A DNA stretch of 64,000 bases from positions 63,116,001 through 63,180,000 of the forward strand of contig NC_083279.1 in the NCBI RefSeq assembly GCF_963506605.1. The letters are read 5' to 3'. This DNA comes from Zootoca vivipara. Its lineage: Eukaryota. This document shows, one piece after another, positions 51,190-55,498 of the stretch. The stretch's first letter is position 1. Each line of letters starts with the position of its first letter. The position numbers and the translations under genes are program-made. The notes under the pieces are model-generated. The model was not told where the DNA came from and ran no database searches. It saw only the letters and a program-made list of their open reading frames with translations.

Positions 51190-51700
51190 CAGCTGCGGCA
51201 AGGCGCTTTTCCAAAGTGCTCCCTGTTTACGCTCCTGCTGGAGCCTGGGAGTATTTCGAGGCCCTTCACTTGAGACTGCTTCGCCCTGACAGCAGCTCCC
51301 CTGGACTCGGCCGCGTTCCTTCCCAGCCTCCTGCCCCTCACGGCCCGCAACAATGGCTGTGAGGTGGGAGTGGGCGTCACAATGGGCGAGAAAATGTGGG
51401 CAGAGGCAGAAAGATGGGCGCCGTGTCCACGACGGCAGCAGGCGGCGCTCCGGGGAAGCGCAAGAGCTTTGCCGCCCGCGATCCTGGACTATGGTTGGCG
51501 GTGGCTTTCGTTCTGGGCCCGTGTGAGTTCTCCTGGTATTTTCCGCCTATGCGGGAGGGGGGGGAGGGAAAGAGGGCGGGGAAAGCGCCTAGCCGCGCCC
51601 CCTTTGCTGGGGTTCGTGCTCGCTCCGGCCTTGAAAGAAAGGGGAAGCGGTTGGCCGGTCCAGATGCAAGATCGCTGGAAGAAGAAGGCTATTTATGAGC
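51190..51700 (+). promoter_or_regulatory. CpG island / promoter of MPZL1-like paralog A
   Basis: GC- and CpG-rich region around exon 1; CAATGG motifs and AAGATGG at the start codon. Confidence 0.65.
51414..51522 (+). CDS. MPZL1: MPZL1-like paralog A exon 1 (signal peptide)
   Basis: MGAVSTTAAGGAPGKRKSFAARDPGLWLAVAFVLGP + T|GTGAGT, phase 1, in a CpG island. Confidence 0.8.
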
Positions 51701-52370
51701 GGCAGCTCAGGGTAGAGGAGGATGGCACGTTGTGACCCCTCTTTGGTTGCGCGTGTCTCAGTACCATACATACACCCTCGACAATCCCCTCCTTGCACAC
51801 GTGCTGAACACATACAAAGGAAACCTGCAATCCTTAAATAGGTTTACAGAATCCACTGTATTCAATGGGATTAAATGTGCTTCGGACCAAGGGGAGAAGT
51901 ATAGAAATCTATACAAATCTGAGGTTCTGCCCCCCCCCCAACAAAAATCCTGGCCACGCCCATGCTTCAGATTAAAGCATTCTTGGACCATTCTCTAGTC
52001 TACGCCTTTCCCCCCTAAAAAGTAAAATCTTGGAAACTGGGAGGTGTCACTTCAACCTCCTGGTTTTCTGTATTTACTTTTGTTGCTTTATTTTCAGTAA
52101 CTCATGGAACACAGTAAAATGAATAGTCACAGAATTTTTATTATTTTTTATTTTGGAAGCAGTTTGCAGTTTTGCACCAGAGTTCCTCGCTAAGATTGTA
52201 TATGCACTTGTAACTCAAATCAGGACCTAGAAACTGCAAAAATGGTACTGAGAACCCATTTCCTTAAGTGTCCCTTCAGTTAGAGCACTGAAACCCTGAA
52301 TAGCACAGTTTAGCAGTTCTAACAAGCCGGGTACAGAATAGGCCAGTATCTAAGCAAGAGGACATGTACA

Positions 52371-52465
52371 TAGGGTTGCCATATTTCAAAAAGTAAAAAC
52401 CAGGACACCCTGAAACTTGTTGAGCTTTTTAAACTCCAGGAAAATCTGGGCGTATGGCAACCCTA
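52371..52465. mobile_element. hAT (Tip100-like) MITE
   Basis: TAGGGTTGCCATA...TATGGCAACCCTA; TSD CATGTACA/CATGTACT. Confidence 0.85.
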
Positions 52466-53221
52466 CATGTACTGTACCAGCAACCCTACATGTACTGTAC
52501 CCTACATGTACAGGTACCAGTACATGCAATTTCACAGCATGTTTAGGATTTTTGTTTTCATATTTATTTATAATGGATTGAACTAACATTAATTACTTAA
52601 AGATAAACTTGTTGCAGGCTTATAAAGGCCCAAAGTTTGATGCATCTGAGAAACCAAAGCACTGGTACAATCTGGGGAAAAAAGAGTTTAACTTTTGCTG
52701 CATGATATGGTAGAAATGTGGTTTTAGTATCTCTGGTCTGTTACCGTAATAAGTCGATTCACTCAAATGTGGTTCTAGATTTTCCCCTTAGTTTTGTTAT
52801 TGCAGATTAGTTTGATTCTTGGAAAATTAACTTTTGAGCTCAGTCCCGTGCAAATCTAGAAGGACTTTTACCTCATTATTTTTCATATAATGAAATCTAT
52901 TTTGGTGAAAGAGCCCTGTGCAGAAATATCTTCTCCAGCGTTCAGTTTTATTCCACATTTCAGGAAGTGTGCCAAACTTCAATATAAAATGACAACAGAG
53001 TACCAAATAAAATCAAAGTTAGAAACCAAAAATATAATGAGAACAGTAATGCAGATATTTTGTGTCTGTGGAACCAAAAGAGTTGTGATGTCTGTTACCT
53101 GTAGTAATCAGCTTGAGATGCTTTCATAATGGACAGCATATCCATATATAAAAACAAATCTTTATGCACAGGTTTGTCTTGCTCTGCATGTTTAAAAACT
53201 GTAATTTTGTTGCTTACAAAG

Positions 53222-53418
53222 GGACGCGGATGGCATCTTGTTCTTTAACAATCGATATCACAGCTAATGAAGAAGTGTCCTCACCAACACAACTCATTGT
53301 GGGGATTGGGGCAGATGTAATGCTTCCATGCACATTCAGGTCATCAGAGGAAATCACCAGTGCAACATCTGTTACGTGGAGCTTTCAACCAGAGGGATCA
53401 AAGGCTCGTCCCATACCA
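53222..53418 (+). CDS. MPZL1: MPZL1-like paralog A exon 2 (N-terminal half of Ig V-set domain)
   Basis: EVSSPTQLIVGIGADVMLPCTFRSS...TSVTWSFQPEG |GTAAGA, phase 0. Two in-frame phase-1 acceptors are possible (53222 or 53264). Confidence 0.88.
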
Positions 53419-54262
53419 GTAAGAGTTAATGTCTGAGCTAATGTCGTTTTGCATAAGAATTTGTGGTGAATTTGGATTACATGTTTTGACAGCGCTACCT
53501 TAATTTTATCTTATGGAAACAATTTATTGTGTACTCTGGAATGACAGCACTTCAGCACTTTTCCTGCAGTGTCATAAAAAAAAATGTAGCCTTTGTGCCA
53601 TTTTATTCACATCATTATTCACTTGGTCCTGCCTCTTTATTTCCTCAATATCACATGGTGTGTCTCTTTGTAGCCTCTTAATAGATGTGTTCTTGCTCCT
53701 AAAACTCAAGTATTTGATGAACAATCCCAATTCCATGCATGTTCACTTTGGAAGTAAGTTCAGAAGGACTTATTCCGAAGTATCTGTACTGTACGATTGC
53801 AATCTGAATCTTCAAAATTCCCCACCCAACTCCCCAGTTTTGTTTCTGCTTTGTCTCCTTTGTCCTTTAACAAATCTGTCTGTAGGAGCTTGCAGCTTGG
53901 GGTATGCAGGGTTGATCACTGACTCTCTCCCTCTCTCCTTCAGATTTATTTGAAGTTCTCTATCTCACTTTCTGCTATAGTGCCCAAGGTGGCACTTTTC
54001 CTTTCCACTTCACTGCATGGCCATCTATTGATATCTTAGGTCTTAGAAATGGTAACTCTTGTATGTATGTGGGGTAGTGTGTCTGAGTGGAGGGATTTTT
54101 CAGGTAAAACCATATAGCCTCGGCTCTGGAATTTGCTGACTGACAGCTGCAATCCTGGGCATATATAATTTTTGTATTATTATTTTTAAACAAATACAAA
54201 TACAATAACCATTAAACACTTATCCAGCAGCACAACTAATGGTGTTCGTTTATATATACATA

Positions 54263-54488
54263 CAGTGGTACATCGGGTTAAGAACTTAATTAATTCTGGA
54301 GGTCCATTCTTAACCTGAAACTATTCTTAACCCGAGGTACCACTTTAGCTAATGGGGCCTCCCACTGCTGCTACGCCACCACTGCACGATTTCTGTTCTC
54401 ATCCTGAGGTAAAGTTCTTAACCCAAAGTACTATTTCTGGGTTAGCGGAGTCTGTAACCTGAAGTGTCTGTAACCCGAGGTACCACTG
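54263..54488. mobile_element. Tc1/mariner (Tigger-like) MITE
   Basis: TA|CAGTGGTACATCGGGTTA...TAACCCGAGGTACCACTG|TA. Confidence 0.88.
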
Positions 54489-55113
54489 TACTTGAGAGTA
54501 GGGCTATGTGCACATTAGCAGCTTGAAATGAAGTAAGGTCATCACCCACCCCACCCCACCCTGCTGCATTTCAAATCACTTTTAAATATTGCTGTTCACA
54601 ACAGAGAAGGGGCAGAGATGCAAGCTCCAATTCACTAAATCTGTCATCCGCACATGTGCAACAGCTGCCTGAAATATACATACCTTAGATAACCATGGTT
54701 TCCATATTCTTAGAGAATGAAAGCTGGGTTGAAGGAAGGCACAGTGTACACAGCCTGAGCTCCACTGAATTTAGTGAGACTTACTTCAGACTGAACATGC
54801 CTAGGATTGGGCAAAAAGTAAGAGAGGCTTTCTAAATGTAACAAGAATAAAGTTTGGTGGTTTGGCTGGCTGCATCTGGGTGTTACCCTTTGTGAATCCA
54901 CTGAAGATCAAGCTTAGCATCCAAGTTTTGTGTAATCAATCCCCGAGGCGTTGGAAACATCCACTCAATGTTACTAAAGCAGGAAGAAAAGTTAAACGTT
55001 CATGCAAAGTTAATCATGGTTTGATTTGAAATTTGAATCCCACTTCTCCAACAACTATGTTCAGCTCAAAGCAGCTATTAACAAAGTTATTGTGTTTGTT
55101 TTTATGCTTACAG

Positions 55114-55491
55114 TTTTTCTATTACTCAAACGGGAGGGAATATAATGGAAAGAATACACAATTCAACGGCCGAAGTACCTGGGCTGGAGATTTTTATGCA
55201 AAGGATGCTTCTATCAAGGTAGCAAACATGCAACCTATAGACAATGGGACTTACTTCTGTGATGTTAAGAACCCACCAGACATAGTCACTGAGCCAGAGC
55301 AAGTTGGAGTTAGAGTTTTGGAGTTAGAGAAAATATTGGGCCCTGGAAGAGCAGCACCAACCCCTGCAAGTACCACAACTGCAATGGCAACCACAGCCTC
55401 TGGAAACATTTCACTTAATGGAGTATCATTTTGGCTACTTGTCCTTCAATTCTGCTGCATTCTAGCATCTTTTCAGAGCTATTTGTTCTGA
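55114..55491 (+). CDS. MPZL1: MPZL1-like paralog A terminal exon 3 (C-terminal half of V-set domain + stalk + GPI-like hydrophobic end)
   Basis: TTACAG| FFYYSNG...WAGDFYAKDASIKVANMQPIDNGTYFCDVKNPPDIV (P0/MPZ family signature), continuing to ...ASGNISLNGVSFWLLVLQFCCILASFQSYLF-stop. Confidence 0.9.
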   Translation, partial: FFYYSNGREYNGKNTQFNGRSTWAGDFYAKDASIKVANMQPIDNGTYFCDVKNPPDIVTEPEQVGVRVLELEKILGPGRAAPTPASTTTAMATTASGNISLNGVSFWLLVLQFCCILASFQSYLF

Positions 55492-55492
55492 A

Positions 55493-55498
55493 AATAAA
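55493..55498 (+). terminator. Polyadenylation signal of paralog A
   Basis: AATAAA immediately after the TGA stop. Confidence 0.6.

Follow-up and report, generated by a model that had tools for sequence, protein, structure and literature searches.

A squamate paralog of MPZL1/PZR with a predicted GPI-type tail in the genome of Zootoca vivipara

Introduction

In mammals, the adhesion receptor MPZL1 (PZR) is encoded by a single gene copy; it signals through SHP-2 and is relevant to Noonan-syndrome signalling and to the migration of cancer cells. One isoform of the human protein, PZR1b, lacks the immunoreceptor tyrosine-based inhibitory motifs (ITIMs). The gene analyzed here, designated copy A, is a paralog of MPZL1 on the forward strand of a 64,000-nucleotide stretch of the Zootoca vivipara genome (assembly GCF_963506605.1, contig NC_083279.1, positions 63,116,001 to 63,180,000), which is referred to as the window; positions are counted from its first letter. 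Its third exon runs on into a tail laid out like a signal for attachment of a glycosylphosphatidylinositol (GPI) anchor. With moderate confidence, copy A is interpreted as an independent, transcribed and squamate-wide paralog of MPZL1/PZR that was duplicated locally and bears a GPI-type tail.

Three known systems are close enough for comparison. First, MPZL1/PZR itself (structures 6IGO, 6IGT and 6IGW) shares with copy A and its relatives, called tail-type here, a signal-peptide exon and a V-set domain split over two exons, with intron phases 1 and 0. The immunoglobulin (Ig) domains are about 50% identical, MPZL1 ranks first among PDB matches in sequence as well as in fold, and the motifs DNGTY and CDVKNPPD are kept. 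However, the tail-type form lacks the transmembrane exon, the stop-transfer sequence RKKNSK, the cytoplasmic exons and the two ITIMs (VIYAQL and VVYADI), which are present in the canonical squamate proteins P0062 and P0061. Instead, a stalk and a hydrophobic C-terminus are encoded in an extended exon 3, the ENGTE site is lost, and the sequences form a separate clade. In human PZR, the ITIM residues Tyr241 and Tyr263 bind PTPN11/SHP-2 (PMC5599542). Second, splice isoforms of human PZR without ITIMs exist (Zannettino et al. 2003, as cited in PMC5599542). Like these, the tail-type form has an MPZL1 ectodomain without ITIM signalling capacity; unlike these, which are splice products of one gene and keep the transmembrane segment, it is a separate gene with a GPI-type C-terminus.

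Third, the GPI-anchored CEACAMs (CEACAM5-8) come from an ITIM-bearing, CEACAM1-like ancestor and have arisen repeatedly (PMC2832619). They offer the closest analogy: the duplicate of an ITIM-bearing Ig receptor became a non-signalling paralog with a similar ligand-binding domain, although the lipid anchor is only predicted for the squamate proteins. The CEACAM signal came about by point mutations and stop codons in the transmembrane exon and is young (primates, swine), whereas the squamate tail directly continues the Ig exon, shows no detectable similarity with the transmembrane exon of MPZL1 and is conserved across most of Squamata. The genetic route to the tail appears to differ from that of the CEACAMs and may be an extension of the Ig exon into the former intron. 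FcgRIIIB is another case in which a receptor of the ITIM type has a non-signalling GPI-type paralog.

The tail-type genes would add a further, independent passage from an ITIM receptor to a non-signalling GPI-type paralog. A natural PZR-like ectodomain without its signalling part, probably lipid-anchored and kept in most lizards and snakes, amounts to an evolutionary experiment on the ectodomain alone.

Results and Discussion

Copy A Is a Transcribed Three-Exon Gene

Copy A consists of the following features. X1 denotes an RNA run described below, and copy B is a second tail-type paralog in the window.

51278 to 51413, forward strand: 5' untranslated region (UTR) of copy A, minimum extent, GC-rich promoter region (X1 RNA contig 51278-51522 continuing into exon 2; shows homology to the sequence flanking exon 1 of copy B)
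51414 to 51522, forward strand: coding exon 1, with the start codon, the predicted signal peptide MGAVSTTAAGGAPGKRKSFAARDPGLWLAVAFVLGP and the first base of a Trp codon (RNA joint 51522>53222)
53222 to 53418, forward strand: coding exon 2, 197 nucleotides, with the end of the signal peptide and the N-terminal half of the V-set domain (Pfam; exact X1 contig)
55114 to 55332, forward strand: exon 3, first part, with the C-terminal half of the V-set domain (NGTYFCDVKNPPD, second Cys) to ..VRVLELEK (Pfam V-set; tblastn)
55333 to 55398, forward strand: stalk ILGPGRAAPTPASTTTAMATTA, 22 residues, rich in Thr, Ala and Pro (composition; low identity among lineages; low predicted local distance difference test score, pLDDT, in the ortholog model)
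55399 to 55428, forward strand: candidate omega region and polar spacer SGNISLNGVS, with A95 just before (rule-based scan; conservation of SG)
55429 to 55491, forward strand: C-terminal hydrophobic stretch FWLLVLQFCCILASFQSYLF and stop codon TGA at 55489-91 (hydropathy; conservation; predicted helix)
55493 to 55498, forward strand: polyadenylation signal AATAAA, 2 nucleotides past the stop, with the transcript end about 20-35 nucleotides downstream (sequence)

With A at -3 and G at +4, the start codon ATG 51414 lies in a good Kozak context. Exon 1, which is 91% identical to residues 1-35 of the database ortholog P0001 (tblastn), ends in phase 1 at the donor GTGAGT at 51523. The acceptor of exon 2 consists of a polypyrimidine tract and the AG at 53220-21, and the codon formed across the junction (t+gg) is Trp, matching the Podarcis ortholog (..LGQWTRMASCS..). 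Exon 2 encodes TRMASCSLTIDITANEEVSSPTQLIVGIGADVMLPCTFRSSEEITSATSVTWSFQPEGSKARPIP, and its complete final codon is followed by GTAAGA (phase 0). Exon 3 begins behind the acceptor AG at 55112-13 (...ttacag) and stays open for 125 codons up to the TGA. The tblastn similarity of canonical MPZL1 to this exon ends at 55323-55335; no GT donor is present at the canonical MPZL1 splice point (gag aaa ata ttg ggc), and past ..VRVLELEK the frame reads ILGPGRAAPTPASTTTAMATTA-SGNISLNGVS-FWLLVLQFCCILASFQSYLF before the stop. In total, copy A has 681 coding nucleotides, i.e., 227 amino acids, with intron phases 1 and then 0. The length of about 213-227 residues given in a first-pass annotation, made from the letters alone, holds at its upper end; the shorter options fall since the acceptor of exon 2 lies at 53222.

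RNA was mapped over positions 51250-56250 of the window using three raw RNA-seq runs labelled with the same species, about 6% of each being read, and Logan contigs of run X1; positions 55528-55596, around the likely 3' end of copy A, were masked. The joints 51522>53222 and 53418>55114, both GT..AG, were present in X1 contigs (depth 19.3 and 8.8), and the same two joints occurred in single raw reads of X20 and X21. One X1 contig matched exon 2 exactly (53222-53418; depth 26.6), another started in the 5' UTR at 51278, and a third was collinear from 55114 to 55527, i.e., unspliced across the terminal exon. RNA depth dropped within 55425-55591 and was zero from 55592 on (55528-55596 masked). No splice joint leaving exon 3 was present in the RNA mapped over 51250-56250. 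Copy A is a real, transcribed three-exon gene. The exons and phases of the first-pass annotation agree with both the sequence and the RNA, in which its two junctions recur, the exon 3 contig reaches 55527 and nothing splices out of exon 3.

Further observations concern the surroundings of the exons. Two intronic repeats resembling short interspersed elements (52252-52418 and 54256-54589) had very high RNA and contig depth with many loose ends; they are transcribed from many other loci and are not parts of the gene. An (ATT)n microsatellite lies at 55538-55576, directly past the likely poly(A) site.

The Ig Domain Belongs to the P0/MPZL1 Subfamily

The exons of the window were searched one at a time, whereas whole-protein analyses (AlphaFold2, PDB, ESM Atlas) were performed with P0001, which is 95% identical to copy A over exon 3. 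The Pfam V-set profile matched exon 2 at profile positions 2-40 (E 4e-5) and exon 3 at 47-109 (E 1.5e-10). The V-set core is complete, with the first Cys in LPCTF, the Trp in VTWSF and the second Cys in NGTYFCDVKNPPD. Copy A also carries the motif NGTY(F/I)CDVKNPPD, typical of the P0/MPZL1 V-set subfamily; the DNGTY glycosylation site is kept, and ENGTE, the first N-glycosylation site of canonical MPZL1, is lost.

Among solved structures, P0001 matched MPZL1 (6IGO, E 1e-33) ahead of P0 (1NEU, E 8e-23) by sequence. In the AlphaFold2 model (alignment A1), the Ig domain comprises residues ~57-172 with a pLDDT of 91-96, and it superposes on 6IGO with a template modelling score (TM) of 0.89, a root mean square deviation of 1.9 Å and 50% identity. 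Foldseek placed MPZL1 chains at ranks 1-6 and P0 chains at ranks 7-9. P0 (MPZ; 1NEU, 8IIA) is of the same Ig subfamily (TM 0.83-0.84 for the fold), but it is more distant than MPZL1 by the above E values and is a transmembrane protein of compact myelin. The exon layout, in which a phase-1 intron follows the signal-peptide exon and a phase-0 intron interrupts the domain, was confirmed by RNA and matches the P0/MPZL1 subfamily. Copy A belongs to this subfamily of V-set Ig proteins.

Tail-Type Genes Form a Separate Squamate Clade

Database proteins matching exon 3 with full coverage were annotated as 'myelin protein zero-like protein 1' or 'Ig-like domain-containing protein'. They came from Podarcis lilfordi (94%), P. 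raffonei, P. muralis, Rhineura, Varanus, Elgaria, Salvator, Lerista, Phrynosoma, Sceloporus, Anolis, Pogona, Phrynocephalus, Candoia and Python, so that lacertids, an amphisbaenian, teiids, Varanus, Elgaria, iguanians, snakes and skinks are covered. All of them share one architecture and a tail that is recognisably homologous, with the consensus SG-x-I-S-L-N-G-x-S-F-W-x-L-V-L-x-F-C-C-I-L-A-S-F-x-x-Y-L-F. Over eight lineages, mean pairwise identity was 66% for the Ig domain, 51% for the hydrophobic tail, 46% for the omega region and 26% for the stalk. These comparisons indicate that the tail is in frame and under constraint across most of Squamata; a frameshifted tail in related species, which the first-pass annotation had named as speaking against its reading, was not what most squamate groups displayed.

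Canonical MPZL1 with the transmembrane segment, RKKNSK and two ITIMs co-occurs with the tail-type form in Podarcis muralis (P0062), Zootoca (P0113), Lerista (P0061), Phrynocephalus (P0066), Rhineura (P0068) and Elgaria (P0067). In a maximum-likelihood tree of 41 proteins (15 tail-type, 15 canonical squamate), the tail-type sequences formed their own 100/100 clade on a long stem (branch length 0.58), and canonical squamate MPZL1 formed a separate 94/98 clade. Copy A is a paralog of MPZL1, not its ortholog, as had been proposed; a canonical ITIM-bearing gene occurs in the same families, and its exon 1 lies in the window. Within the tail clade, the skink was basal, and iguanian, snake and lacertid groups were recovered broadly as in the squamate tree. 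This branching argues for vertical descent since at least the split of skinks from other squamates, and the duplication appears to be at least older than that split. The gene had been called lineage-specific, and the tail was detected only in squamates; the gene is not a recent local novelty, since it extends from skinks to snakes.

A family profile was searched against 1.84 billion representative proteins and gave 1,238 matches, the best 150 of which were inspected. Among these 150, the tail occurred only in squamate-type sequences (P0001, P0015, P0018). P0144, P0145 and P0148 are read-through models into intron 3 of canonical genes, and their tails are unrelated. Since a word search with the tail alone matched only lacertid proteins, there is no donor family for it. 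No tail-bearing protein of gecko, tuatara, turtle, archosaur or mammal was detected in these searches, which is a lack of detection and no proof of absence. An origin of the tail from the transmembrane exon was considered, with 'EKENIPASS' of copy B as a trace of the start of canonical exon 4 ('NLPVFP'), and was rejected as unsupported: if deletions are assumed, the segment fits 'TPAS' in the stalk of copy A no less closely, and a long stalk is the general state in other squamates.

Tail-type proteins are already contained in NCBI, UniProt and Ensembl, where automatic annotation has filed them under the name of the canonical gene. The label 'MPZL1' is the wrong name for them, and sharing it with true MPZL1 confounds squamate orthology tables. 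A literature search on GPI-linked MPZL1 or on MPZL duplications in squamates returned nothing relevant.

In turtles, several models named 'MPZL1' (P0028, P0032, P0033, P0036, P0019) contain two nearly identical tandem V-set domains. The Ig exons thus appear to have been duplicated recently and independently in turtles, in an event that has nothing to do with the tail-type genes of squamates.

The C-Terminal Tail Has the Layout of a GPI Signal

Proteins destined for GPI anchoring have a signal peptide for the endoplasmic reticulum (ER) and, further on, a flexible linker that leads to an omega site, where omega and omega+2 are small residues; a spacer 5-10 residues long and a moderately hydrophobic C-terminal stretch without cytoplasmic residues follow. 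The hydrophobicity of this stretch usually stays below that of transmembrane segments. The rules applied here reportedly go back to Eisenhaber, Pierleoni and others.

The predicted signal peptide of copy A has a basic n-region (KRK), the hydrophobic core GLWLAVAFVLGPW and a region of small residues (ASCS); the AlphaFold2 model of P0001 has a predicted helix at 25-33 in this region. The stalk is probably O-glycosylated and disordered, and residues 176-205 of the model have a pLDDT below 50. Omega candidates are ASG and NIS, 30 and 27 residues from the C-terminus (rule-based scan), and have equivalents in the orthologs. Ser-Gly is kept in nearly all tail-type orthologs, which makes it the best candidate by sequence for omega/omega+1 or omega+1/omega+2. 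The spacer behind the omega candidates measures 5-8 residues in tail-type proteins (ISLNGVS in copy A). The last 20 residues of copy A have a mean Kyte-Doolittle hydropathy of 1.74, the last 25 are uncharged, and the protein ends with FQSYLF, a basic stop-transfer residue being absent. For tail-type proteins in general, the mean over the last 20 residues is 1.3-2.2 vs. 2.7-3.1 for canonical transmembrane segments. This layout is maintained in at least 13 species despite the divergence of the stalk.

As every applied rule fits, GPI anchoring of copy A is predicted. In the rule-based scan, the C-terminal layout agreed with the classical GPI-signal rules, as the first-pass annotation had held; its description of a predicted signal peptide, an intact V-set domain, a missing GT at the MPZL1 splice point, the succession of stalk, small residues, spacer and 20-residue hydrophobic stretch, and the AATAAA likewise stands on the sequence. 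The nearest feature clusters of P0001 in the ESM Atlas include Thy-1 (CD90; 0.93 and 0.91), a single V-set domain held by GPI. This is a weak but independent hint at a GPI-type architecture and only a lead; it marks a likeness of architecture and not of descent. The Ig domain of Thy-1 is not specifically related, and Thy-1 has no long Thr-rich stalk.

Several points weigh against this interpretation of copy A as an expressed GPI-type gene. First, the depth of raw RNA-seq was very low, with single junction reads in the fraction of the three runs that was read, and X1 is only presumed to be RNA, though its contigs lack introns and thus argue that it contains spliced RNA. Second, the tail is unusually conserved for a cleaved signal (L-V-L-x-F-C-C-I-L-A-S, with near-invariant Cys), and a conserved hydrophobic tail could be retained in the mature protein. 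Third, with the conserved Ser as omega, omega+2 is Asn in several species, which is suboptimal. Fourth, the predicted tails of Elgaria P0014 (..LLLHFSICSKVFVLKTNTS) and Salvator P0012 (..ASCMGCS) diverge near the end, which may be due to a frameshift, an annotation error or a lineage-specific change.

The conservation of the tail bears above all on the possibility that the C-terminal helix is not cleaved and anchors a minimal type I membrane protein with almost no cytoplasmic tail. Its Cys-Cys/Gln face could then serve lateral association, e.g., with canonical PZR or another signalling chain. The tail is better conserved than the stalk (51% vs. 26%), its Cys is near-invariant, FCCILAS persists from skinks to snakes, and the model of P0001 contains a 19-residue C-terminal helix at 210-228. 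A polar Gln inside a helix is, moreover, typical of interacting transmembrane segments. However, the hydropathy of 1.7 is well under that of canonical transmembrane segments (2.7-3.1), no flanking basic residue fixes the topology, and the small-residue cluster and spacer lie at the exact distance of a GPI signal. Some true GPI signals, such as those of PrP and Thy-1, are also well conserved. A transmembrane anchor of this kind is considered unlikely, though it deserves to be taken seriously.

The moderate hydrophobicity of the tail, which contains Gln, Ser and Tyr, would also suit a protein whose tail serves neither for GPI attachment nor as a stable membrane anchor, so that an MPZL1-like Ig protein is secreted as a soluble ligand or decoy. 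Related families such as the CEACAMs have secreted members (PMC2832619). Secretion, however, would not require an uncharged hydrophobic C-terminus of 20 residues that has persisted for as long as the clade itself. A protein whose GPI-like signal stays uncleaved is normally held back in the cell and degraded. Secretion is thus judged improbable.

A local duplication of the MPZL1 promoter, the signal-peptide exon and the two Ig exons probably gave rise to the tail-type gene, in which the unspliced third exon reads on into the stalk, the small-residue site A-S-G-N, the polar spacer and the hydrophobic C-terminus. If the tail is a GPI signal, the following course can be proposed. The signal peptide would direct the protein to the ER, where GPI transamidase would cut at or next to the conserved Ser-Gly and the GPI lipid would be added. 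The product, similar to Thy-1, would expose one V-set domain of the MPZL1 type, carried by a glycosylated stalk that is held in the outer leaflet of the membrane. Because the transmembrane segment and the ITIMs are absent, it would be unable to recruit SHP-2. By analogy, it may act as a non-signalling, releasable binder that competes for or presents ligands of the PZR ectodomain, or it may adhere on its own. The first-pass annotation had suggested that it may be a sheddable or decoy molecule.

Genomic Setting of the Tail-Type Genes

Two further exons related to MPZL1 were located downstream of copy A.

58389 to 58524, reverse strand: exon 1 of canonical (ITIM-type) MPZL1, MAVATVAVAALTAPGGGGGYSPRQGAAPLPAWLSSLLLAAAALGL, with the phase-1 donor GTGGGT (tblastn with P0062, strand read)
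60139 to 60256, forward strand: exon 1 of copy B, the second tail-type paralog, of the short-stalk type like Podarcis P0011/P0015, with the remainder beyond the window (tblastn with P0015/P0011, 70-88% identity)

The lacertid canonical protein P0062 matched 58533-58438 on the minus strand with 90.6% identity over 32 amino acids. tblastn gave no other canonical MPZL1 exon in the 64-kb window and, even at relaxed thresholds, no transmembrane/ITIM exon or relic of one. With no ITIM in the open reading frame (ORF) of copy A either, the description of the gene as ITIM-less is upheld. If the assembly is right, canonical MPZL1 runs leftward with a first intron of more than 58 kb, and copy A lies antisense inside it; otherwise, a rearrangement or an assembly inversion accounts for the order. 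In this genome, splicing from copy A to transmembrane/ITIM exons is not possible, since the body of canonical MPZL1 occupies the opposite strand.

Canonical exon 1 is inverted between the two tail-type genes. Copy B exon 1 stands head-to-head with it, 1.6 kb apart, in a CpG-rich stretch (GC 0.50). Homology between the exon 1 regions of copies A and B spans the 5' UTR and reaches into the beginning of intron 1 (76% column identity; copy B flanks 59990-60400), and therefore the duplicated unit included the promoter. Lacertids have two tail-type genes, copy A and copy B, the latter with a shorter stalk; in the Podarcis proteins P0011/P0015 of the copy B type, it is reduced to ..EKENIPASSGNISSFW... 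The 5' UTR of copy A contains several out-of-frame upstream ATGs (51353, 51383, 51394), one of which is kept in copy B: conservation between the two 5' UTRs extends to the upstream ATG in CAATGGCTGTGAGGTGGG. Translation of copy A may thus be regulated by upstream ORFs.

Two gene predictions bear on whether copy A is an independent functional gene at all; it might instead be a decaying duplicate, or belong to canonical MPZL1 as an isoform or an alternative 5' module. In Varanus komodoensis, the Gnomon isoform P0093 splices the tail-type exon 2 onto canonical MPZL1 exon 2, which is either a chimeric prediction or a sign of a same-strand arrangement in Varanus. In Podarcis muralis, the predicted isoform P0027 (..DASIK|GEHRQRHN) uses a donor inside exon 3 and has its Ig domain cut short; the equivalent internal GT in copy A is at window position 55219 on the forward strand (AAG|GTAGCA), and no joint from it was seen in the mapped RNA. 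On the other side, canonical exon 1 is on the opposite strand in the window, at least 13 species have an intact ORF and an in-frame tail, the promoter-proximal exon 1, the stop and the AATAAA are the gene's own, and the three-exon form is present in RNA. An isoform or a decaying duplicate is thus largely refuted and very improbable.

The conservation of FCCILAS allows a bolder, tentative proposal, to which we assign a low likelihood. The tail may be more than a disposable signal, and the tail-type protein may be a dedicated partner of PZR. Kept for probably well over 100 million years, head-to-head with or antisense in the MPZL1 locus, this partner would modulate signalling through PZR and SHP-2, whether by competing as a GPI-linked protein or by pairing with PZR in cis as a tail-less membrane subunit. 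If true, it would establish a 'paired receptor' system for a molecule regarded as a singleton in mammals.

Other features of the window were few. An Rfam scan of 50-64 kb gave no match. An ORF of 518 amino acids at 24652-26208 on the forward strand contains a reverse-transcriptase domain (RVT_1, E 2.5e-40) and belongs to a retroelement of the long interspersed (LINE) type within the presumed large MPZL1 intron.

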